In this document: positions 853 to 23,607 of the stretch, in pieces
Layout: every line of letters starts with the position of its first letter
Position numbering within the stretch: position 1 is the first letter of the stretch
From: Ministeria vibrans ATCC 50519
Taxonomy: Eukaryota; Protista; Filasterea
Reading direction: 5' to 3'
Assembly (NCBI GenBank): GCA_943704425.1
Contig: CALSCP010000556.1
Span: forward strand, 31,517 to 95,516
Length of the DNA stretch: 64,000 nucleotides
The notes under the pieces: model-generated
What the model was told of the DNA's origin: nothing
The model's input: only the letters and a program-made list of their open reading frames with translations
The model's database searches: none
Made by a program: the position numbers and the translations under genes

Positions 853-3022
853 TTATTGTGGTGTGGTATTTTCAGAAGGTTTCGGATTCATTGGAGAGCT
901 GCGTACTCTACTCAAGTTGAACGTCTTGGCCTTACCCATCGCCTTGATCTATTAAAAAACATGTGTGAGACAAAAAAGGAAACTGGGAGACATACTACTA
1001 TTTTGTTTACCTTGAGCAGTGTCGAAATGCTGGTGATGGTGCGCACGGCATTCTCGACTTCCTCGTCAGTAACCTCAACGGGCTCTGCACAGTTCTCTTC
1101 AATGCTCGGAAGAGTCACACTGCCATTGCATGTTGTAAAGGGATGGTCCTAATATGGGAAAGTTGCGCAACAGTGAGAAACATTTTGTGTGTGTTTTTGC
1201 GTACGCGAATTTGAGGGATTGTGATGCGTTTTGAGGGATCTTTGGTAAGCATTTTGAGAACAATGTCTTTGTAGTCTGAGGGCAGTTGACGACGCGACGG
1301 AAACGAAACGCTATAGTGAGGGAAAGAGAGTTCAGTCGTGTGTGTGTGATTTGAGATGAATAATTATTTTGGTACGGGTCACTGCGAATCTTTTCGTGTA
1401 GATCAAGAATGTTTGAGCCAACAAAGGGAACTGAGCCATATCCAAAGCAAAAGAGAGTAATGCCAAGAGCCCACACGTCAACAGGACGACCATGATAGGA
1501 TGACGCATCAGCTGATGTAGAGAGAAAAGTGTGCGAGTGAGAGGGGCGACAGATTCAATAGGCAAACAGAGCGAGAGAGAGAAAGACAAGTTAGGGGGGA
1601 GTGAATTGATGCAAAGAGTGACAATAACGGAGTCAATTGGAAGGGATTAAATGATAAACATGCACAGTGAGTGATTGTGAAGAGTTTGAAAATGTAAAAA
1701 AAACTTACTGTTGAGCACTTCAGGCGCAAGAAACGCAGGAGACCCTTTGGTCGCACTCAGTTCATCTTGAGATCCCTAATACACGATTTAATCGTACCAC
1801 ACACACAAAAAAAGATGAGTCGGAAACAAAATGCAAACTTTCAAATATCAGAGCCGAATAAATCAGTTGACCATACGCAATCTCACTCTCACACTCTCAA
1901 TCAGTATCAATCAATAAAATATACCCATTCAAAATGAGGGAACTTTCAAACATCAATCTGTATCTCAAACGCAAATGGTTTACCTGAGTGATGTGAGAGA
2001 CGCCAAAGTCAGTAATCTTGGCAATGCCATCGTCATCAATGAGAATATTGCCCGGCTTAATGTCACGGTGGATAATGTGCTTGTGATGCACTAAACCAGC
2101 AGAGACAAAAAACGCAGAGAAGTACCGCAGTGAGAATAGAATGGCAGACACAACGTGAGACAAAGTGAGAGAGACAAAATCACACTTCTTACGGTATTCA
2201 AGAGCCAACACGACATGAACAAAGTAGCGATGAGTGAGTTCGAGGGAGAGAGGCTCAACCTGTTGGACTTCCTTGATCTCCATGACAGCGCCAGAGCCGA
2301 CCAGCTCAAAGACAAGGAAGAGACTGTCCTGGCCAGTGTCGTCCATGACTTCAATGAGACGTACTACGTTGGCGTGCTGCAGTTTCTTCAGGATGGCAAT
2401 TTCACGACGCACGTCGTCCAGTGGAGTTGCGCGAGGAGCTGAAAGGAAGAGGAAAAGGAGAATGTTTGGGAATATAAAAAAGAGTCAACAAAAGGAATTT
2501 TGATTGTCATTACGTCCTGGTCGCGGTGGCCCAAGCGGTCCCTTTTTTCTCAGACGTTTCTTGTTGAGTACTTTGATGGCCTACACACACACACACACAC
2601 ACACGCACACATGTTCAGCTCCTTATCGATGTTCCTTCGCCCTTTTCAGTACGTATCGCTGGTTCGTTTCGTTGTCAATCGCCAATCGCACTACACCAAA
2701 CGCTCCGCGTCCCAACATTTTGTACATTGTGTACTGATTGATAATCTCAGCATCGTCGTCAACCTGCGACAACAGAATATTTTCATAAGACACCCAATCT
2801 CTGCGCATCTCCTTTTCCGTCTCCTATCCTTACCTCTTCTCTTGACACAGTGGTAGTTTCACGCGTCTCCACACTGCGCTTTCGTCTGGGCGACTGTAGC
2901 AATGGTCTGTAGGGCACCGGTGATTTCTGCTCTTCGCGACGCAGTGATGTCGGCGCTAATCCCACAACAACAAGTAAAATACAACAACAACCCATAAATT
3001 AATGAGTTCCACAAAGAATCTC

Positions 3023-4682: not shown

Positions 4683-5624
4683 TTTGTCTTTTGTGGTTTA
4701 TTTGCAGAAATCACGAGTCGGTGTGCCGCCTCTTAGGTGCTGTACGACACGAGGGGGACACTATTCTTGTGCTCGAGTACTTTCCCCACGATCACTTTCA
4801 TGTAAACAACACACAAATAAGACAATGTTATGCTCACATGAAACGTCTGTTAGGACTACTTTGAACGACTCACGCTGGACGACACCCGTGCCTACATGCG
4901 CGGCCTCTTCTCAGCCATGGAACACATTCACGCCCTTGGCATCATCCACCGCGACATCAAACCACGCAACTTTCTCTTTAATCCGACCACACACCAATGC
5001 AAACTGGTCGACTTTGGTCTCTCCGAGTGTCGCCCCGCCACCTCAAAGCACCACCCCTCTCTCACCGCCGCAAGCAAATCATCCACTGCTGGGGGCCTTG
5101 CCGCCAGTCACAGTCACAGTCACGCCACCGGCACGACCAGCGCCAAACCCATTCTGCACACTGTCGGTCTTGCGGGTGTCTTGCGCCACGACACCCGGCC
5201 CAAGGCGCGCTTTGTGCGTGCCGGCACCCGTGGCTTCCGCGCCGTCGAAGTCCTCCTGCAGTCGCAGCACCAAACAACTGCCATTGACGTATGGTGTGCC
5301 GGTGTGATCCTCCTCATGATCGCCGCCCGTCGCTACCCCCTCTTTGACTCCACCGACGACATGAACGGTCTGTGCGAGCTCGCGTGTGTCTTTGGCACGC
5401 GCGAACTCATCGCAGTCGCCGCAAAGCTCAACAAGACGCTCTCCTTCCACGACCATCGACCGGCCGTCCAACTCAACGACCTCTGTGACCTTCTCGCACC
5501 CACACGCGTCCAAGACTGGGCCTGCTCCGACGACATGCTCTCACTGATGAACCACTGTCTTGCACTCGATCCACACGATCGTATTACGGCTGAAGATGCG
5601 CTCAAGTTGCCCTTCTTTGAATGA
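4136..5624 (+). CDS. CDC7: Cell division cycle 7 (DDK) kinase, 4 exons
   Basis: KLGE|GAFSIVY, VALKKLYSNSSPQRIANEI, HRDIKPRNFLF, KLVDFGL, kinase insert, RAGTRGFRAVEVL, QTTAIDVWCAGVI, RITAEDAL; three GT-AG introns. Confidence 0.9.
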
Positions 5625-5880
5625 ATATCTCAAATGTACATCCATGTAAAACAAACCATGAAACCAACAATTGAAACCGATTTGTACAATGTCGAATACG
5701 CACGTGTACTGTACTTGTGTGGTCGATTGTGATTTTTATATAAGTGATCGAAAAATAAAAAACGAAAATAATATTGAAAAATGAAAAATCACAATTGTTA
5801 TTTGTTCGACTCACACTCAAAGTCACGCGACTTCACAGTTCACGAACATCCTTAGAGTATTATATTTTTGACTCTTGACA

Positions 5881-8800
5881 ATGGCAGCATCCCCACAGAC
5901 TGCGGGCATGACGGCTCACAAATACGCGATTGTCATCGGACGAACCATTTTCGACTCGAACACGCTCGAGCTTGGTACGCTGCCAGGGGTCGCGGCGACC
6001 GTCCGCAACATGGCGGTTGACCTTGTGCGCAACGGGTTCAAGGCGGTCGTGCTCGCAGACACGCCCATGGCGCTGTCGCTGCCCGCTTTCGACAATCCCC
6101 TTGAAAAAGGGTACGTCGACTTTGCGGTCACCGCCACTCAGAAGAAGGACCTGCTGTGGCTGCAGGCGGACACGACGCCTGCACACATTCGCAGCGCACT
6201 CGTTGACCTGGCTGCCATGGTCTCTGGGCACCTGCCGGGTCCGCTCGACGACTTGGTCATTTACATCTGCTCGCACGGCGTCCTCAACGCCAGCGACGGC
6301 TCGTACGGCGTAGCACTCGCCGACGTTCGGCGCACCAAGGCGAGTGTCCTCGATGCGAACGGTGACGTTGTGCACCCCGCCCAGTATGCCGACGCGTACA
6401 CGATGGAGCAGTTGCGCGACGACTTGCGCGTCGAGCAAGAACAGCGCTGGCGCAACACTCTTGTGGTGCTCGACACGTGCCATTCGGGAGGGGCGTTTGA
6501 TGCGACGGAGGTGTCGCTACGTGCGGTCGGAACGGAGGCAACCGATCAGATGCAGACGGTGTTTCAGAAGGAGTCGTACCAGTGCTTGGCGGCGGTGCCT
6601 TGTACTTCGTCGGCGTTCTGTCTGAGGCACGGCACGGTGCTGCACATGGCGCTGCGACGAGCATGGCTGTTGCCTGGTGGCGATGGCGGGGCGTTTGCGC
6701 GGGACCGCGAGGGTGCAGCGCGGTGGGCGACAATTGGACGCGTGGCGGACCGTGTCAATGTGGAACTGGCGTCGCTGATGACAGAGATTGTGCAGAATAT
6801 GCCGGCGCACCTGAAGAAATCCAACGACAAGTACTTCTTACTGCAGACGTGTCTGTTGGGACGACTGCCGTGGCGCGGGGCGCACAACACGGGGGAGTTT
6901 GTGGTGTTCAACGAGAAGTACAGGGGGCGCAACAAGCTGGTCATGGTGCCTGCTGTGCCGGCGAGTTTCACGGGACGCCAGAAGGAGTTGGGGCAGTTGG
7001 AGACACGACTGCAACAGAGTGGGACTGCGGCGATTGGGAACCTGACGGTGTCGGCTGCGGGCGGGGTGGGAAAGAGCACACTGGCGGCGGAGTATGTGCG
7101 ACGGAATGCGCATGAGTACCACTCGGTAATTTGGGTGCAGGGAAAGAGTGCGACGACGATGATGGGATCGTATCGGGAGGCAGTGCGGTACATTCCACTG
7201 AAGGATGTGGATGCTGCCAACGCAAAGGAAGAGGAGGTGGTGGCGGCAGTGAAAGAATGGCTGTCGCACGAACGAGGATGGTTGATGGTGGTGGACGGAT
7301 GTGATGTGATCACAGACGAGATGAAGACGATGATGCCCGGTGGCGTGATGGAGGGGAAGATGATTGTGACGACACGATTGCGAAGTGTGGAGGAGTTGGG
7401 AGCGCTGTTTGAAGGAGGAGACGCACCGATGGAGCTGGGGGTATTTGATGAGGATGAGGGAATGGAGTACATGCGGAAGCGACTGGCGAAACGCGCGAAT
7501 GAAGGAGATGCGTTGAGGGATATCGTGCGTGCTGTAGGAGGAATGCCATTGGCACTTGAGTTGGCGGCAGCGTATCTGGCAGCGACGCCACATGTGAGTG
7601 CTGGAAGGTATCGTGCACGGATGGAGGCAGACAGATTGAAGGCGTTGAAGAAGAGGAGTGGAGGAGGAGGATTGGAAGATCGAGTGGTGGCGACGTACGA
7701 GCCGAGTTTGGCGCGAGCGATGGAGATTGGAGGGAAGGAGGTGGTGGGAAAGATGGTTGGAGTGACGGGTTTTTTAGAGGGGAGCGGAATGGAGGTGGCG
7801 GTGCTGCGATTGCTGGTGATGGGGCAGAGGGAGGAAGAAGAGGCGGATGAGGATGCGTTTGATGTTGCACTTGGTGCGTTGTGTCGTCTGTGCGTGGTTG
7901 ATGTGAGCGGGAGTGTGGTCTCGATGCATCAGTTGGTGCAGGACGTGTGTCGCGTAGTGGCATTTGGAGATGAGGAGGAGATGTGGAGTGAGTTGCAGAA
8001 GGTGGGGAGAGTGTTGGAAGAGGAGATTGATGATGAATCGAAAGTGTATGGAGATGTGGAGTGGAGTCGACGAGTGGGAGTGCATGGAATGCGAGTGATG
8101 GAGTGGGCGTGTGTCGAGGTGGGGAGAAGGCGGACTCGTGGCGAAACGGAGGAGTATGGTGATGGTGTTGTGTGGCTGGGAATCCAATTGAGTGTGATGT
8201 GGCGGACGTTGGGGATGTACAAGTTGGCTCTTTGTGCTGCTGAGAATGCGTGTGATTGTGTGTATGACAAGACATCAGTGCTGGCTGCAAGTGCATTTAG
8301 GACATTGGGTACTGTCCATGAGTGCCAAGGTGAATACACAAAAGCTGTGGAGGTGTATGGGCAAGCACTTGTGATTCAAGAAGCAAAGCTGGGCAAAGAC
8401 CATTCTGAGACTGGCGACACACTGAACAACATGGCTGGTGTGTTCAAGGCACAAGGAGACTACAGTCGTGCTCTTGAGTACTATGAACGTGCTCTGACCA
8501 TCTGTGAGAAGTCTGTTGGTCCCGACCACCCATCCACGAGCATCACATTGAACAACATGGCTGTTGTGTTCGAGGCACAAGGAGACTACAATCGTGCTCT
8601 TGAGTACTATGAGCGTGCTCTGACNNNNNNNNNNNNNNNNNNNNNNNNNNNNNNNNNNNNNNNNNNNNNNNNNNNNNNNNNNNNNNNNNNNNNNNNNNNN
8701 NNNNNNNNNNNNNNNNNNNNNNNNNNNNNNNNNNNNNNNNNNNNNNNNNNNNNNNNNNNNNNNNNNNNNNNNNNNNNNNNNNNNNNNNNNNNNNNNNNNN

Positions 8801-11115
8801 NNNNNNNNNNNNNNNNNNNNNNNNNNNNNNNNNNNNNNNNNNNNNNNNNNNNNNNNNNNNNNNNNNNNNNNNNNNNNNNNNNNNNNNNNNNNNNNNNNNN
8901 NNNNNNNNNNNNNNNNNNNNNNNNNNNNNNNNNNNNNNNNNNNNNNNNNNNNACACAAGGAGACTACAGTCGTGCTCTTGAGTACTACGAGCGTGCTCTG
9001 ACCATCTGTGAGAAGTCTGTTGGTCCCGACCACCCATCCACAGGCAGCACATTGAGGAACATGGCTGGTGTGTTCAAGGCACAAGGAGACTACAGTCGTG
9101 CACTTGAGTACTACGAGCGTGCTCTGACCATCCGTGAGAAGTCTGTTGGTCCCGAGCACCCATCCACAGGCATCACATTGAACAACATGGCTGGTGTGTT
9201 CGAGGCACAAGGAGACTACAGTCGTGCACTTGAGTACTATGAGCGTGCTCTGACCATCCGTGAGAAGTCTGTTGGTCCCGACCACCAATCTACAGGCGAC
9301 ACATTGAACAACATGGCTGGTGTGTTCGAGGCACAAGGAGACTACAGTCGTGCTCTTGAGTACTATAACCGTGCTCTGACCATCTGTGAGACGTCTGTTG
9401 GTCCCGACAACCCATCCACAGGCGACATCATTTTCAACATGGCGGATATGTTTGATAAACAAGGAGACTACAGTCGTGCTCTTGAGTACTATGAGCGTAC
9501 TCTGACCATTTATGAGAAGTCTGTTGGTCCCGACCACCCATCCACAGGCGACACATTGAACAACATGGCTGGTGTGTTCAAGGCACGAGGAGACTACAGT
9601 CGTGCGCTAGAGTGCTATGCGCGTGCTATGACCATTCGTGAGAAGTCTGTTGGTCCCGACCACCCGTCCGCAGGCGACACATTGAATAACATGGCTGTTG
9701 TGTTTAAGGCGCAAGGAGACTACAGTCGTGCTCTTGAGTACTATGAACGTGCTCTGACCATCTGTGAGAAGTCTGTTGGTCCCGACCACCCATCCACGAG
9801 CATCACATTGAACAACATGGCTGTTGTGTTCGAGGCACAAGGAGACTACAATCGTGCTCTTGAGTACTATGAGCGTGCTCTGGCCATCCGTGAGAAGTCT
9901 GTTGGTCCCGACCACCCATCCACAGGCAACACATTGAACAACATGGCTGGTGTGTTCGAGGCACAAGGAGACTACAGTCGTGCTCTTGAGTACTATGCGC
10001 GTGCTATGACCATCCGTGAGAAGTCTGTTGGTCCCGACCACCCATCCACAGGCGACACATTGAACGACATGGCTATTGTGGTCCAGGCACAAGGAGACTA
10101 CAGTCGTGCTCTTGAGTACTATGAGCGTGCTCTGATCATCCGTGAGAAGTCTGTTGGTCCCGACCACCCATCCACAGGCGGCACATTGAACAACATGGCT
10201 GTTGTGTTCAAGACACAAGGAGATTACAGTCGTGCTCTTGAGTACTATGAGCGTGCGCTGACCATCTGTGAGAAGTCTGTTGGTCCCGACCACCCATCCA
10301 CGAGCATCACATTGAACAACATGGCTGGTGTGTTCGAGGCACAAGGAGACTACAGTCGTGCTCTTGAGTACTATAACCGTGCTCTGACCATTTATGAGAG
10401 GTCTCTTGGTCCCGACCACCCATCGACGGGCACCACATTGAACAACATGGCCATTGTGTTCGAGGTACAAGGAGACTACAGTCGTGCTCTTGAGTACTAC
10501 GAGCGTGCTCTGACCATCCGTGAGAAGTCTGTTGGTCCCGACCACCCATCCACAGGCGACACATTGAACAACATGGCTGTTGTGTTCCGTGCACAAGGAG
10601 ACTACAATCGTGCTCTTGAGTACTATGAACGTGCTATGACCATCCGTGAGAAGTCTGTTGGTCCCGACCACCCATCCACAGGCAGCACATTGAACAACAT
10701 GGCTGTTGTGTTCGAGGCACAAGGAGACTACAGTCGTGCTCTTGAGTACTATGCGCGTGCTCTGACTATCTGTGAGAAATCTGTTGGTCCCGACCACCCA
10801 TCCACAGGCGACACATTGAACAACATGGCTGGTGTGTTCGAGGCACAAGGAGACTACAGTCGTGCTCTTGAGTACTATGAACGTGCTCTGGCCATCCGTG
10901 AGACGTCTGTTGGACCCGACCACCGATATACAGGCGACATCGTTTTCAACATGGCGGATATGTTTGAGAAACAAGGAGACTACTGTCGTGCTCTTCCACT
11001 GTTCGAGCGCGCTCTAACAATTTCTGAGAACACACTTGGACAGTCGCACCCAGACACAATCTCGAACCGACTATCTTTCGATCGCGTTCACCAACGCTTG
11101 TACAATATTCTCTGA
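5881..11115 (+). CDS. NLR-like protein: caspase-like (peptidase C14) domain + NB-ARC STAND NTPase + TPR array; no introns seen, spans N-gap 8625-8952
   Basis: His/Cys dyad IYICSHG...VVLDTCHSG; FTGRQKEL; P-loop GGVGKSTLA; Walker B WLMVVDGCD; IVTTR; GGMPLALELAAAY; SMHQLVQ; 42-aa TPRs. First ATG at 5881. Confidence 0.92.
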   Translation: MAASPQTAGMTAHKYAIVIGRTIFDSNTLELGTLPGVAATVRNMAVDLVRNGFKAVVLADTPMALSLPAFDNPLEKGYVDFAVTATQKKDLLWLQADTTPAHIRSALVDLAAMVSGHLPGPLDDLVIYICSHGVLNASDGSYGVALADVRRTKASVLDANGDVVHPAQYADAYTMEQLRDDLRVEQEQRWRNTLVVLDTCHSGGAFDATEVSLRAVGTEATDQMQTVFQKESYQCLAAVPCTSSAFCLRHGTVLHMALRRAWLLPGGDGGAFARDREGAARWATIGRVADRVNVELASLMTEIVQNMPAHLKKSNDKYFLLQTCLLGRLPWRGAHNTGEFVVFNEKYRGRNKLVMVPAVPASFTGRQKELGQLETRLQQSGTAAIGNLTVSAAGGVGKSTLAAEYVRRNAHEYHSVIWVQGKSATTMMGSYREAVRYIPLKDVDAANAKEEEVVAAVKEWLSHERGWLMVVDGCDVITDEMKTMMPGGVMEGKMIVTTRLRSVEELGALFEGGDAPMELGVFDEDEGMEYMRKRLAKRANEGDALRDIVRAVGGMPLALELAAAYLAATPHVSAGRYRARMEADRLKALKKRSGGGGLEDRVVATYEPSLARAMEIGGKEVVGKMVGVTGFLEGSGMEVAVLRLLVMGQREEEEADEDAFDVALGALCRLCVVDVSGSVVSMHQLVQDVCRVVAFGDEEEMWSELQKVGRVLEEEIDDESKVYGDVEWSRRVGVHGMRVMEWACVEVGRRRTRGETEEYGDGVVWLGIQLSVMWRTLGMYKLALCAAENACDCVYDKTSVLAASAFRTLGTVHECQGEYTKAVEVYGQALVIQEAKLGKDHSETGDTLNNMAGVFKAQGDYSRALEYYERALTICEKSVGPDHPSTSITLNNMAVVFEAQGDYNRALEYYERALXXXXXXXXXXXXXXXXXXXXXXXXXXXXXXXXXXXXXXXXXXXXXXXXXXXXXXXXXXXXXXXXXXXXXXXXXXXXXXXXXXXXXXXXXXXXXXXXXXXXXXXXXXXXXXTQGDYSRALEYYERALTICEKSVGPDHPSTGSTLRNMAGVFKAQGDYSRALEYYERALTIREKSVGPEHPSTGITLNNMAGVFEAQGDYSRALEYYERALTIREKSVGPDHQSTGDTLNNMAGVFEAQGDYSRALEYYNRALTICETSVGPDNPSTGDIIFNMADMFDKQGDYSRALEYYERTLTIYEKSVGPDHPSTGDTLNNMAGVFKARGDYSRALECYARAMTIREKSVGPDHPSAGDTLNNMAVVFKAQGDYSRALEYYERALTICEKSVGPDHPSTSITLNNMAVVFEAQGDYNRALEYYERALAIREKSVGPDHPSTGNTLNNMAGVFEAQGDYSRALEYYARAMTIREKSVGPDHPSTGDTLNDMAIVVQAQGDYSRALEYYERALIIREKSVGPDHPSTGGTLNNMAVVFKTQGDYSRALEYYERALTICEKSVGPDHPSTSITLNNMAGVFEAQGDYSRALEYYNRALTIYERSLGPDHPSTGTTLNNMAIVFEVQGDYSRALEYYERALTIREKSVGPDHPSTGDTLNNMAVVFRAQGDYNRALEYYERAMTIREKSVGPDHPSTGSTLNNMAVVFEAQGDYSRALEYYARALTICEKSVGPDHPSTGDTLNNMAGVFEAQGDYSRALEYYERALAIRETSVGPDHRYTGDIVFNMADMFEKQGDYCRALPLFERALTISENTLGQSHPDTISNRLSFDRVHQRLYNIL
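8413..11058 (+). repeat. Coding tandem array of ~21 near-identical 126-bp TPR units
   Basis: Unit starts at 8413, 8539, (gap), 9043, 9169 ... 10933, all 126 bp apart; phase is preserved across the gap. Confidence 0.95.
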
Positions 11116-13246: not shown

Positions 13247-16200
13247 NNNNNNNNNNGGAACGCACAGAAAAAAAAAAAAAAAGCGCACGTCGTTGTCCGC
13301 GAGGTCCTCACAATCGGGCGTGTACCGCTCCTTCTCGGCCGCCGACTCTACTTTTATGCTGTTCAAACCGCTCTGCGCTGTCTTGCGGCACCGTCTCACC
13401 CGCCCGATCGCTCTTGTAGGTTCAAGTTGAAAGCATTCTCAAAATTCGACGACACCACCGTCGCCCTGGCCGCGTCCACAGCCATTTCTGAGGGGAAAAT
13501 GGACGAACAAATGGTACGCCGACTGTGTGCCCCTCAAACCCACTTGGATTCGTTTTACTCGTGTCAACAGTTCTCCTTTTTTTTTTTTTTTTTTTCTTTC
13601 GTACTGTTTCATTCATCCTTTTGATCACTGCATGTTCGCGCGGCACGCCGACCGCAGCACCCCTCACCCGATGCTGTATTGACTCGCCCCTGTTTCTGTT
13701 TCTCCCGTGCGCCCTTCAGGAAGCGTTCCTGCGCGAGAACATCCTCGACAAGAAGCTCAAGGACAAGCTCGCTGTCGCCGATGCCAAGCTCGGGAGCTCC
13801 ATCAAGGAGGCGCTGGGGATCAGCTGTGTCAACGACGAGATTGTGCGTGAACTCATGCGCGGCGTCCGCGAGCAAATGTCCTCTCTTGTCACAGGTTAGG
13901 AAATGAGTACACACACACACACACACAAATACGACTGTACTGACTCACCTCTGAGACAGAGGAAGGCGACGAAGCAGCCTCACTGGCCATTCCTGAGATA
14001 CTCTCGAGACTTTTGCGAGCAGCGTCCATTCCAAACGTACCATAGATGGCCTGTACCAGCGCTCGGTAGACCCGGTGCGCGAGCACAGGTGGGAGGAGAC
14101 GTAGCTGGTCTGCGTGCGTCTCGCAGACATGTGCAAGCACTTGAAAAAATTCAGTGGCGAGCGAAGGGTCACGGAGGGTCGAAACGGTAACAAAGGGAAG
14201 AAGGTGCTGCAGTGCACGCACAACCACCGCACCCACGTCGGTCTCTCCATCACCGCTACTGTCGTGAACGAGCACCTCGCATGCCAGATCAAGGTAGTCG
14301 CGTGACAGTAAGTGGCTCATGAGCGTCAGAAGCATTCGAAGGTTCTCCGTGTGTCCACTGAGCGACCGCTCTCGTTCTCCTCCGCGATTTTCTTTGCCAT
14401 CTCTCCCTCCTCCTTCACCTTGGCCATCACCGCCATCGTCGTCAAACGACGCAATGCTAAACTCCTGATGGTTTTCGCTGTACACACGCACTGCATCAAG
14501 CGACGCCGAGAGCACCTGTGCCAGCTCAAGGGCCGGTAGATAGGGCACAGTGTGTAGCACAAAGGCAACCGAGGCATCCAGCGCACTGTCGACCACCGCA
14601 CACGACACGTCCGCACGGTACACGACAAAAAGAAAAGGCAGTGCTTGCAGCAGAGGATACACACACGCGTAGATGCCACTCCAGTTATCACTTGTGGTTG
14701 ACCCCGATACGCCACGTAAAATGTCGCACACAGCAATGAGCGAAAGCATCACAGCGGGCTCTTGAGCGGTCCGTGCGGCAAATCCGTCGCCCGACACAAT
14801 GTGTGTGAGTGTCTCGGTCGCCGTCGCGTGCCACAGGGCCTTCACCGAGTGATGCGGGTCCTGGGCATCCGCTGCGTTTGCCGTAATTCCCGCCGCCACA
14901 CTCCGGCGCACCTCTGAGGCCATATTCGCCGTGGATGGGTCCAGTAGCTGGCGCGCCAGCAAAACCAATTGCCCCGACTGTACGGTACAGCGACGTGCGC
15001 ACGCCCCCACATCCGACAGCGCCAACAGCAACCCGGCTGTCTCGGCTGCGACCGCCCGTTCGCCGGCCCACGCGTGCAGATTCAATGAAATCTTCCGCAG
15101 CATCATGTCGACGTAGGCAGGGCCGTAGGTGTCGCAGCCGTACGCACTCACAAGAGTCCGGCTGAACACACGGTTGCCGGACTCACGGTCGTCGTGCATC
15201 AAGTAGGTGTGAACCCAGCGCGCCAAGAACCACGCACAGGTCTCGGCAAGCGACGGCGATACCAGGCCCACCGCACCCCGTTCGAGAAACGTGTTCTCCA
15301 GCTCGGCCACACCCAGCGCAGTCTGTGCCAAGCGCACCACCGGGTTGGTCTGACCATCGTCGGCGTCGGGTCCCACACAGGCGCCTTGCTCCGAGGGCTC
15401 CTCGCCCGTGCGCACCCGACAGTACCGCACAATCTCGTCGGGCACCACGGCTCGTTCGCCCGAACTGTCGTCGGCAAGCGTATAGCCTGTGACCAGCAGA
15501 ATCCAGTGCAGTCGTTCGGCAAGCACCGGTGGGACGGCGGTATCACCAGCAGCCGCCACCGCTCGCAACTGCTCAATTCCTTCGCCGCACATGGTCTGCA
15601 GAATGCCCACACACGGCTCCAGGGCAACGCGCGCCAGAGCCGCCACACCACCCAACTGTTCGGCATACTGTTCAATGTCGCCGTCGACACAGTCCTCGTC
15701 AATGTCGTCGTCGAGCTCGGCGTCGCGCTCTGCCGCCCGCATACGCGACTCGACATACGACCGGAACACATGCTCGGCATAGGGTGTCCAAAAGCCCGAT
15801 GGGATCTCACTGACAGACTGGGTGAGCAGAACCCAGCCATCGAGAAACACGGTGAGCGCCTCGTCGCACCACTGCGTGGAGGGCTCGTCGACATCGCCAC
15901 ACACGCCGTGGCGCATGGCCGCCACCGTAGCCCGCGTGAGCATGTGCAGAAACGACTGGACGACGGGCGCTTGATCGTGCGTGCACAGGTAGGCCATATC
16001 GCATTGGATCACGAGGGCCGACACAGCGTGCGCCAGGGTGTGCAGGTCGACAGCGACGTCGTACAGCTCCGCGCCCAAAGACTGACTTGCCTCAGCGGCT
16101 GTCTCTGCCAGCGCCACACTGTCGCCCATCACGCGCTCCAGCGCCCCCATCACTCGTACGCGGTACTGATGAATGTCACCCTTGCTCGCAAAGACGGGTC

Positions 16201-17164
16201 CGCGCAGTGAAGCAAGGCGCATGAGGCACTGGCCAGTGTGCAGCAGTGCGCTGTCGGCATTGTTGCATCGACGCAACAGCGTGTGAAGCTCGACGAGCGT
16301 CTCAAGGGTCTGTCCTTCAACAAGCATCGCATGCCAGTTTCCATCGGGCGAGAGAGGTGGCAGCTTGTTGGGTGCCAACGAGGTGTTGTCGATGCCAGCG
16401 GTGAAGCGGCGTGGCGCGGCCGACGACGACGTTGAGGGTGCTTCGCAAAACGTCCACAGCAGCACTGCTTCGCAAAGTTGTGCGTACGCGGCAATCACAT
16501 TGAGTGTGTCGCTACCAAGCGGTGTGGTGGCAGCAGCAGCAGTGGTGGTGTGTACTCGGAGGCAGTCGAGCGCAAGCGAAAAGACACTGGTGAGAGCGGG
16601 TCCTTCAAAAGCGCGTTTGCACTCTTCGTGCGTCTCCCAGGCGAGTCCCAGACACGTGGCCTTTTCCGGACTGGCAAACTCGTGGAGGAGGGCCAGGAGG
16701 AGGGCGCAGGCGAGGCGCTGGAGCGCCACCGAGTCGGTGCGCGCCAAACCAACAGCCTGTTCAAACACGAGATTTCGTGCGGCGGCGCCGTCTTCGCCCG
16801 GATCAAGCCAGCTTCGCTTGACCACAACCGCCACGGTGATGAGCAGCTGTTCGCGCACAAAGGGACGCAGCGTGCCGGCTGTGGCGCGCGACGAGAGGAA
16901 CCCAATGCACTGCGCACACAACTGAGTCGTTCGCGAGCGCGGCACGTCGTTCCACAGACGCACCACGGCCGCCTTGAGACCCGACGCAGCATGGAACAGC
17001 AGGTAGTCGTGCTGCGTCTGCTCCAGGAGTGCGCACAGGCTCTCGAGAGGCGCATTGGCCAGCGCCAGCAGAGTCGATTCCGCTGCCTTGCGCTGCTGGG
17101 GCGTCACCATATTCGACATGGATTGCGCCAGCGAGGCGGCCGCCTCCAAGTGGGGGACGTCCAT
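12770..17164 (-). CDS. XPO4: Exportin-4; exons 17164-13949 and 13129-12770
   Basis: Importin-beta-like N-terminus (QRKAAESTLL, YLLFHAASGLKAAVVR, KRSWLD, HEECKRAFE, LHWILLVTGYTLADD). Phase-0 intron GTGAGT(13948)..TAG(13130) joins ...SVSE|VVSGQL..., ending FCAIVRPILCVS like the XPO4 C-terminus. Confidence 0.9.
13421..13894 (+). other. NOP58: Two-exon internal fragment of NOP58 (box C/D snoRNP protein) with no start or stop, inside the XPO4 intron
   Basis: FKLKAFSKFDDTTVALAASTAISEGKM..|EAFLRENILDKKLKDKLAVADAKLGSSIKEALGISCVNDEIVRELMRGVREQM; clean GT-AG intron at ~13513-13719. Confidence 0.8.
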
Positions 17165-17278
17165 GATGAAAAGGTAAGTGAATAAAATAAATTCGAATCG
17201 ATTTATTCGATCTTTTACTTTTTAACTATTAGTTGTTGCTCTCTCTCGCTGTCTCATTGGTGTCTCATTGACACGGAT

Positions 17279-23050: not shown

Positions 23051-23172
23051 GGTGTGCGACACCCCCCGTTCACATCTGGTCTCCCACGATATTACTTGCG
23101 AAGGCTTGCACGAGCTTAACTTGAGTGTTCGGAAGAGAACTCGTGTTTCNNNNNNNNNAGAATGGCGGTACC
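23051..23172 (-). rRNA. 5S rRNA, divergent, interrupted by a 9-N gap
   Basis: Reverse complement: GGTACCGCCATTCT-N9-GAAACAC..CCGAAC..AAGTTAAGC..GCAAGTAATATCGTGGGAGACC..GAAC..GGTGTCGCACACC followed by T9; ~120 nt with A-box and C-box-like motifs. Confidence 0.8.
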
Positions 23173-23607
23173 TGCAGTGGTTCGGACGCGGCAAGTTAAT
23201 ATTAAACAATAGACTTTACACAGTGAAAATAAAATAATCTCACATCTGGAACCAGAGCTTGTATCGGCGGGTTCAACCACCCCGCAACAACCGCATGCTA
23301 TAGCCAATAATTGCTATTCATTCTTTTGAATCTTTTCCGTTTTTGGAAGTTAATGTCTGTCGTCTGAGGATAATTTCAGTGACTAACGTGATAATTTACA
23401 TAAACTAAAATATAACCCGCAATTCTTTGTTTGTTTTCACCTGCTTCTGTGTCGCCTGGTTTTTCACCGAAAATGTGTGAGAAAGTCTGAAAGTGTGTGA
23501 GAATGTGTGCAAGTGTGTGTGTATGAACATTGTGGTAATCTTAAAGAGTCATGAGCTGTTGTTGAGATGAGAGAAAGGAGAAAGTTTTATACATGAGAGT
23601 TTGACTC

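Follow-up and report, generated by a model that had tools for sequence, protein, structure and literature searches.

A predicted NLR-like gene family with a caspase-like protease head in the filasterean Ministeria vibrans

Architecture of the gene

The window analysed here, a stretch of 64,000 nucleotides from the genome of Ministeria vibrans ATCC 50519 (C556:31517-95516, in an assembly of 29.7 Mb and 2860 contigs), carries a gene in which a caspase-like protease head, an NB-ARC nucleotide-binding and oligomerisation domain (NOD) and a long array of tetratricopeptide repeats (TPRs) are joined in one predicted chain. We think it reasonably probable that the product is a tripartite STAND (signal transduction ATPase with numerous domains) protein, similar to NOD-like receptors (NLRs), in which an active C14 protease head, an NB-ARC switch and a TPR array would together form a ligand-triggered cell-death or defence receptor with its own effector. 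The gene occupies a single open frame on the + strand (5875-11115), with the first ATG at 5881 and an in-frame stop just upstream of 5875, and this is the sole long frame with family support in the region; long antisense frames over the gene were rejected as by-products of the repeats that lack such support. A sequence-only reading of this DNA had placed protease, NB-ARC and TPR modules in one reading frame, and this was borne out, as there is one frame and the assembly gap within it is in frame as written.

The features of the gene are given below in window positions, with residues counted from the methionine at 5881. Two family alignments are referred to, namely A1, which holds 27 copies of the N-terminal domain from this genome, and A2, a NOD alignment and profile of 18 sequences that include bacterial relatives and TPR-bearing metagenome hits. 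Confidence in the structural model is given as the predicted local distance difference test score (pLDDT).

5881-11115, + strand: complete coding frame of 1744 codons as written, with the gap counted in; stop codon at 11113-11115
5914-6915, + strand: divergent Peptidase C14 (caspase/metacaspase-like, clan CD) domain, residues 12-345, from profile and fold evidence
6268-6279, + strand: CSHG, residues 130-133, with the predicted catalytic His132-Gly133 at a strand end; aligns on the invariant GHG of C14 proteins
6469-6489, + strand: LDTCHSG, residues 197-203, with the predicted catalytic Cys200 and the invariant Asp198 (metacaspase-type DxCHSG); aligns on the invariant LDxC of C14 proteins
6916-6975, + strand: linker between protease and NOD, family consensus NKLAMVPAVPASFTG, from A1; pLDDT below 50 at residues 356-365
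6979-7587, + strand: NB-ARC nucleotide-binding domain (PF00931, 52.6 bits, E 5e-14, cut-off 23.5), at the same place in the own-genome family search
7060-7077, + strand: P-loop GGVGKS, residues 394-399 (Lys398); in A2 the G-G-K columns show little or no variation
7282-7299, + strand: Walker B LMVVDG, residues 468-473; Asp invariant in A2
7363-7377, + strand: sensor 1 (RNBS-B) IVTTR, residues 495-499; Arg invariant in A2
7537-7554, + strand: GLPL-type GGMPLA, residues 553-558; P-L-A invariant in A2
7588-8265, + strand: ARC/winged-helix region and spacer before the repeats, from the FxSxx_TPR span and the AfsR structure match
7924-7938, + strand: MHD-type MHQLV, residues 682-686 (His683; MHQ replaces MHD); His invariant over the 18 sequences, bacterial ones included
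8266-8624, + strand: TPR array left of the gap, with degenerate first units, one full 42-residue unit and one cut unit; TPR_12, 127 bits
8625-8952: assembly gap of 328 N inside the TPR array; as written, the remainder of one unit and two whole units
8953-11097, + strand: TPR array right of the gap, with 16 near-identical units of 42 residues (126 nt) and one degenerate capping unit; TPR_12, 1031 bits in 17 stretches
11098-11115, + strand: five-residue tail and stop codon

The protease head

The caspase assignment needed further evidence, because the gene's own Peptidase_C14 (PF00656) score of 16.6 bits is under the Pfam cut-off of 21.4; among the three modules named in the sequence-only reading, NB-ARC and TPR are above cut-off in the Pfam scan but the protease is below it. 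Four paralogues exceed the C14 cut-off (27.4 bits in C138, 24.1 in C1441, 23.9 in C1613 and 22.8 in C328), and a weak match to the NCBIfam family caspase_w_EACC1 was found in the gene itself. Five residues (Asp60, Trp93, Trp190, Asp198 and Arg328) do not vary across the 27 domains of A1; Gly133 and Cys200 are retained in at least 90% of these domains and His132 in most. An AlphaFold2 model built from A1 (pLDDT 87.7, predicted template modelling score 0.89) has an alpha/beta fold with the caspase central sheet that marks clan CD, and its top PDB matches in Foldseek (MALT1, procaspase-7, the Geobacter caspase-like protein 3bij and metacaspase 4, with E-values from 4e-7) are all of the caspase fold. 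His132 lies inside the modelled strand 124-136 and Cys200 directly after strand 192-199, which are the canonical positions.

A word search with the protease domain gave one match. When the A1 profile was run against 1.84 billion representatives, 347 proteins were found at E <= 0.001, and seven of ten sampled hits were above the Pfam C14 cut-off. Comparison of A1 by hhalign with a profile of 12 hits, 11 of them Pfam C14, gave a probability of 99.8% (E 1.2e-28), with both catalytic motifs placed on the invariant GHG and LDxC columns listed above. By these comparisons the head is a divergent C14 member with an intact His-Cys dyad; the dyad that had been read directly from the letters (SHG..LDTCHSG) was upheld by A1, by hhalign and by the model positions, and a C14 fold is predicted. 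Arabidopsis metacaspase 4, the MALT1 paracaspase, caspases and legumain, all of clan CD, are only 12-22% identical to the head, which differs from them by having about 30 additional residues inserted from His to Cys (residues 140-170) and by a longer C-terminal half.

Overall, the head is probably an active metacaspase-like C14 cysteine protease that uses His132, Cys200 and Asp198. The S1 pocket of metacaspases and paracaspases is lined by the Asp that precedes the Cys by two residues, and this Asp is associated with cleavage after Arg or Lys; by analogy, Asp198 in the DxC motif suggests the same preference rather than cleavage after Asp. Not every family member is expected to cut, because the Cys is gone from some paralogues (LDSSQIG in C837, LDTSDSA in C1075) and the His from one (GRG in C2675), all three with long open frames kept. 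Such losses, as well as the pseudo-orthocaspases known in bacteria (PMC6426788), speak for a pseudo-protease, that is, a non-catalytic scaffold or regulator that would signal by recruiting partners and not by cutting. For the window gene this is quite unlikely, considering that its copy keeps His132, Gly133, Asp198 and Cys200, that both catalytic residues fall on invariant catalytic columns of C14 proteins, and that, of the 27 domains, every one has Asp198 and at least 90% have the Cys.

The NB-ARC switch and the TPR array

The central module is, by its score above the Pfam cut-off and by the presence of all five motifs, an NB-ARC STAND ATPase, and the full motif set claimed earlier was found (Walker A, Walker B, sensor 1, GLPL and an MHD-type motif). 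The NCBIfam model FxSxx_TPR (NF040586) matched residues 358-915 in one stretch with 206 bits, which does not reach its cut-off of 300, so that the module is a relative of this family and not a member. The single NOD sequence had no match in the PDB; with the A2 profile, Streptomyces AfsR was the best match to the whole NOD-TPR module (E 5e-22), followed by plant NLRs.

The repeats, which are 42-residue units of the kinesin light chain (KLC) type by their families (TPR_12/TPR_10; PF13424/PF13374), number about 22, and KLC1/2 were the best PDB matches of A2. The long TPR array reported in the sequence-only reading is thus present, and we infer its role as the sensor. Mean pairwise nucleotide identity is 86% over the 18 readable units (16 right and 2 left of the gap), some pairs being identical. 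Variation among units is focused at positions 12, 18, 31, 38 and 41, with less at 16, 20, 34 and 42. In the layout of KLC-type TPRs, positions 31, 34, 38 and 41 lie on one face of helix A, and positions 12, 16 and 20 on one face of helix B. In fungal NLRs, Dyrka et al. described TPR arrays with high internal conservation and few variable positions on the concave face, a pattern that they tied to concerted evolution and diversifying selection (PMC4986451). At the level of sequence, the repeat pattern of the window gene is the one described for these fungal TPRs.

The assembly gap falls within this array. The flanks carry one stop-free frame per side, the same on both sides, and the last 60 bases left of the gap align to the array on its right at offsets 116 and 242. 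In terms of the 126-base repeat, the sequence breaks off at phase 50 on the left and resumes at phase 0 on the right; the missing bases should therefore number 76 + n x 126, and the 328 bases written correspond to exactly n = 2. As written (328 = 76 + 2 x 126), the gap is therefore in frame and in repeat phase, and any whole number of 126-base units in it would keep the frame. A gap of this kind could hide a stop or a frameshift, or could fuse two paralogues, one supplying the 5' part and the other the TPR array; mis-joins are invited by the DNA identity of 90-93% between the arrays of different paralogues, and the gap length is only an estimate. However, the units left of the gap are closest to the gene's own right-side array (97.6% over 210 nt, as compared to at most 93% for the arrays of 12 other paralogues), which argues against a join of two loci, and paralogues of the same layout have uninterrupted frames of up to 1990 residues. 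With the gap also exactly in frame and in phase, a broken frame or a scaffolding chimera seems highly improbable.

A family of paralogues with exchanged modules

Genome-wide searches gave 37 matches to the N-terminal domain and 32 to the NOD region, and the count of paralogues that had been proposed as a check yielded about 17 full-length copies among these, located on many contigs, none with an internal stop and with open frames of up to 1990 residues. NB-ARC loci number 29 in the genome, 12 of them without a C14 match. Ratios of nonsynonymous to synonymous substitution (dN/dS) against eight paralogues were 0.22-0.46 for the protease, 0.22-0.51 for the NOD and 0.21-0.35 for the ARC region, and these values of about 0.2-0.5 indicate that every module is kept by purifying selection. 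The modules have different nearest relatives, as judged from a comparison of window 5881-8250 with L016, L014 and L018. The protease is nearest to the C1077 copy (synonymous divergence, dS, 0.20), and the NOD is nearest to the C837 copy (dS 0.14), the protease of which is remote (dS 1.6) and lacks the Cys; in the His-less C2675 copy, the NOD is 82% and the protease 36% identical to that of the window gene. Recombination or domain exchange within the family is a likely explanation for these sequence relationships.

The sensor part varies as well. The C138 copy (L031:2239-7767, - strand) is a frame of 1843 residues with C14 (27.4 bits), NB-ARC (107.6 bits) and WD40 propellers. This copy is built on an Apaf-1-type chassis that carries the protease in cis, and the PDB matches of its NOD include ZAR1, NRC proteins and Apaf-1. 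At C837:26333-30736 (L037:2334-6737, + strand), a frame of 1468 residues combines a caspase-like domain with leucine-rich repeats (LRRs), just upstream of the Cys-less caspase-like/NB-ARC/TPR paralogue at C837:32285. Shorter family frames of 320-600 residues carry the domain alone or with unannotated tails. In its many paralogues, swapped modules, conserved repeats and few variable positions, the predicted family resembles an NLR repertoire.

Several side observations were made in the course of these comparisons. The GC skew of the gene (window 5881-11112) is +0.09 in the protease, +0.54 in the NOD/ARC region and -0.02 in the TPR array, and these jumps, together with a drop in the GC content of third codon positions (GC3) from 0.76 to 0.54, are consistent with modules of different history. 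Two loci on one contig, C2085:41595-43937 (+ strand) and 96471-98813 (- strand), have identical scores in opposite orientation and represent an inverted duplication with copies about 55 kb apart. A degraded copy, P0001 (L042:588-2180), is without the catalytic-Cys region, with remnants of the protease and ARC regions fused, and is followed by a separate C14 gene of 339 residues (L042:2170-3189) that is 22% identical to the window domain.

Genomic setting, occurrence elsewhere and the question of horizontal transfer

The gene is genuine and nuclear, and its host is a microbial eukaryote. Protein-kinase pieces that are split over several open reading frames lie at window positions 4896-5621 (+ strand) and 1900-2412 (- strand), with about 260 bases between the end of one kinase gene and the receptor gene's start. 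Downstream, a frame of 1110 residues at 13892-17221 (- strand) encodes a homologue of exportin-4 that is 25% identical over 96% of its length to snail XPO4, its best named relative being an animal protein. The only Rfam match in the window was a 5S rRNA at 23051-23173 (- strand; 42.8 bits as compared to a gathering score of 38). This genome is reported to have been assembled from culture metagenomes (PMC9492541). Bacterial contamination was ruled out by the kinase exons and the exportin-4 gene on the same contig and by the presence of paralogues on many contigs. The sequence-only reading had set the gene, as one without introns, among intron-rich genes. While the flanking kinase is indeed split over several frames, the window also holds other open frames of 1100-1565 residues, and the missing introns are therefore no strong signal.

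Close hits from a word search and a large search came from the ENA assembly ERZ23497376 (sample SAMN09406036) and the Logan run SRR23272272. These were rejected as independent relatives, as they represent the same organism assembled independently; for the four contigs compared (L041, L043, L044 and L046), DNA identity to loci of this genome is about 99-99.8%. Two further frames from ERZ23497376 (P0074 and P0075) correspond to other paralogues, and neither of them reaches across the gap. By comparison, P0081, on a contig of 2153 bases from another assembly (GCA_025491055.1, JAOQFC010032800.1; L047:317-1990), is 33% identical over residues 188-698 and keeps DACHSGG, linker and P-loop in the same order, showing that the caspase-like/NB-ARC fusion occurs in at least one other organism. 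The best further non-self hits of the protease profile reached about 50 bits. The search with the NOD region, in which the word search was dominated by prokaryotic data, gave NB-ARC-TPR proteins of 23-30% identity, several of them with TIR heads; all named ones are bacterial and belong to actinobacteria, cyanobacteria, Chloroflexi and myxobacteria.

A bacterial origin by horizontal transfer, of the gene or of its NB-ARC-TPR module, is a possibility that we would put clearly below even. It agrees with the bacterial names of all NOD hits, with FxSxx_TPR (206 bits) as the best NCBIfam match, with the absence of introns from all paralogues and with the fact that protease-STAND-repeat fusions are common in bacteria (PMC3501461). 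On the other hand, identity to any bacterial protein is low, the best non-self hits of the protease profile are weak, the word search is dominated by prokaryotic data, and the three modules have GC3 values (0.76, 0.62 and 0.54) inside the spread seen for other long window frames (0.42-0.71, mostly 0.55-0.70). Moreover, the family is old in the lineage, as indicated by dS values above 1.5 between paralogues and by the 33%-identical relative in a second assembly, and this makes a recent transfer very unlikely as judged from the sequences. The earlier suggestion that the gene was possibly horizontally acquired consequently finds no support as a recent event, given GC3 values like those of its neighbours, eukaryotic flanking genes, old paralogues and the remoteness of the outside NOD relatives, the nearest of which are only 25-30% identical. 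The NB-ARC-TPR module or the whole fusion may have an ancient bacterial origin, with which the hit lists are compatible.

Proposed mechanism

With this repertoire-like evolution, a ligand-triggered receptor with its own effector is probably the best reading of the family. In such a receptor, the TPR array would bind the ligand and, until then, keep the NOD in a closed form with ADP bound. A ligand that docks on the variable face of the TPRs would free the NOD for nucleotide exchange, and ATP-bound NODs would oligomerise into a ring, as in other STAND proteins. Oligomerisation would crowd the N-terminal protease domains and activate them by proximity, in cis, doing what Apaf-1 does in trans for caspase-9. 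Most likely, such a receptor would trigger cell death or some other reaction of defence or to non-self. An expanded and selected family, shuffled modules, the existence of a WD40 version and TPR arrays like those of fungal NLRs also suggest, from the sequence data, that the fusion is actively used for recognition and is not a stray one.

A number of points weigh against this receptor model. The Pfam C14 score of the head is under its cut-off, and among PDB sequences the A1 family profile found nothing below E 0.4 and no solved caspase. A few paralogues are without the Cys or the His, and 328 bases of the gene are unread in the assembly gap. PADLOC matched no STAND defence model (Avs, bNACHT) but only a generic TPR model (E 8.6e-10), and a search of the genome for gasdermin (PF04598) gave no match, which is uninformative because control genomes were equally silent. 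Metacaspases are usually monomeric and activated by calcium, and activation by proximity is therefore an analogy.

The same architecture could also belong to a STAND regulator with a non-immune role, for example in stress or developmental signalling, of the AfsR or MalT type, with the number of paralogues reflecting neutral birth and death. The match to the Streptomyces regulator AfsR, the best for the whole module in structure searches with the NOD-TPR profile, fits such a role; however, no DNA-binding domain was found among the Pfam matches of the gene. In addition, three features of the family are hallmarks of NLR-type recognition repertoires (PMC4986451): its effector is an enzyme of the death type, its numerous paralogues have swapped effectors, NODs and sensors, and its repeats are almost identical apart from a few variable positions. 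We regard a purely regulatory role as rather improbable in comparison with the receptor model.

Taken further, the receptor model would give a single-celled relative of animals a diversified set of about 20 genes for intracellular recognition, in which a caspase-family protease is combined in cis with NB-ARC and TPR, WD40 or LRR modules, as a working "one-chain apoptosome/inflammasome". In this full form the proposal is speculative and on balance unlikely to hold. If true, it would show how protease activation by STAND oligomerisation could work in the animal stem lineage before death-fold adaptors separated sensor and protease. The interest of the gene lies in its position on the tree, as that of a relative of animals, and in the simplicity of the system, in which a single polypeptide would work without adaptors and possibly without a downstream partner, and which lets one ask whether STAND oligomerisation alone activates a metacaspase-like protease and what single-celled animal relatives recognise.

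Comparison with known systems

The combination of protease, STAND module and repeats is of a known kind, and here it is new for relatives of animals as far as the literature found; the literature search, incomplete in coverage, gave no report of a C14/caspase-family-NB-ARC fusion family in a holozoan protist. The study of sponge NLRs found in unicellular holozoans only NACHT proteins with ANK, TPR or WD40, and strict NLRs absent outside animals (PMC3879445). By the strict nomenclature used there, an NLR is a NACHT or NB-ARC domain plus LRRs (PMC3879445); since the Pfam scan matched only TPR families among the repeats of the window gene, with no LRRs, its product is an NLR-like STAND protein and not an NLR in the strict sense. 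In animals, amphioxus has LRR-caspase and TNFR-caspase fusions as well as TIR-NB-ARC-WD40 proteins (PMC2575513), and placozoans have many NB-ARC genes, with CARD-caspases as separate genes (PMC6321704).

In bacteria, metacaspase-NACHT-WD40 proteins are widespread and two metacaspase-NB-ARC proteins are known from Chloroflexus (PMC3501461). Like the window gene, these bacterial metacaspase or orthocaspase-STAND-repeat proteins carry a C14 protease in cis with a STAND NTPase and protein-binding repeats, and a distant hit of the family profile, P0109, with C14, nSTAND1 and HEAT, follows the same logic. Unlike them, the window gene has a eukaryotic host, its protease is of a separate and very divergent C14 subfamily, its NOD is an NB-ARC with KLC-type TPRs, and it belongs to about 20 recombining paralogues. 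The AfsR and FxSxx-COOH-system TPR proteins have an NB-ARC, ARC and TPR module that matches the gene over its whole length; the gene differs from them by a score below the cut-off of 300, by the absence of a SARP DNA-binding domain and by its protease head.

The fungal NB-ARC-TPR NLRs are close in layout. In a small subset of fungal NLRs, heads of the S8 or CHAT protease type activate gasdermins, and PLP-1 is a patatin-NB-ARC-TPR protein (PMC12881547). Along with sesB-like/NB-ARC/TPR proteins, these share with the window gene the effector-NB-ARC-TPR order and an opisthokont host, and fungal NLRs and the gene have in common KLC-like TPR units with internal conservation above 85%, few variable positions and combinatorial swapping of modules. 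The window gene differs in its effector, a C14 metacaspase-like domain instead of CHAT, S8 or patatin.

Animals use CARD, death or PYD adaptors to bring the caspase to a platform of the NB-ARC or NACHT type. The gene differs from the Apaf-1/CED-4 apoptosome in having no CARD, in carrying the protease in the same chain rather than recruiting it, and in having TPRs rather than WD40; the term "apoptosome-like" in the sequence-only reading is thus acceptable for a possible way of working but not for membership, as CARD and WD40 are both missing from the gene. The likeness, by analogy, is that of an NB-ARC switch expected to oligomerise and to activate a caspase-family protease by proximity, and the C138 paralogue shares with Apaf-1 the combination of NB-ARC and WD40.

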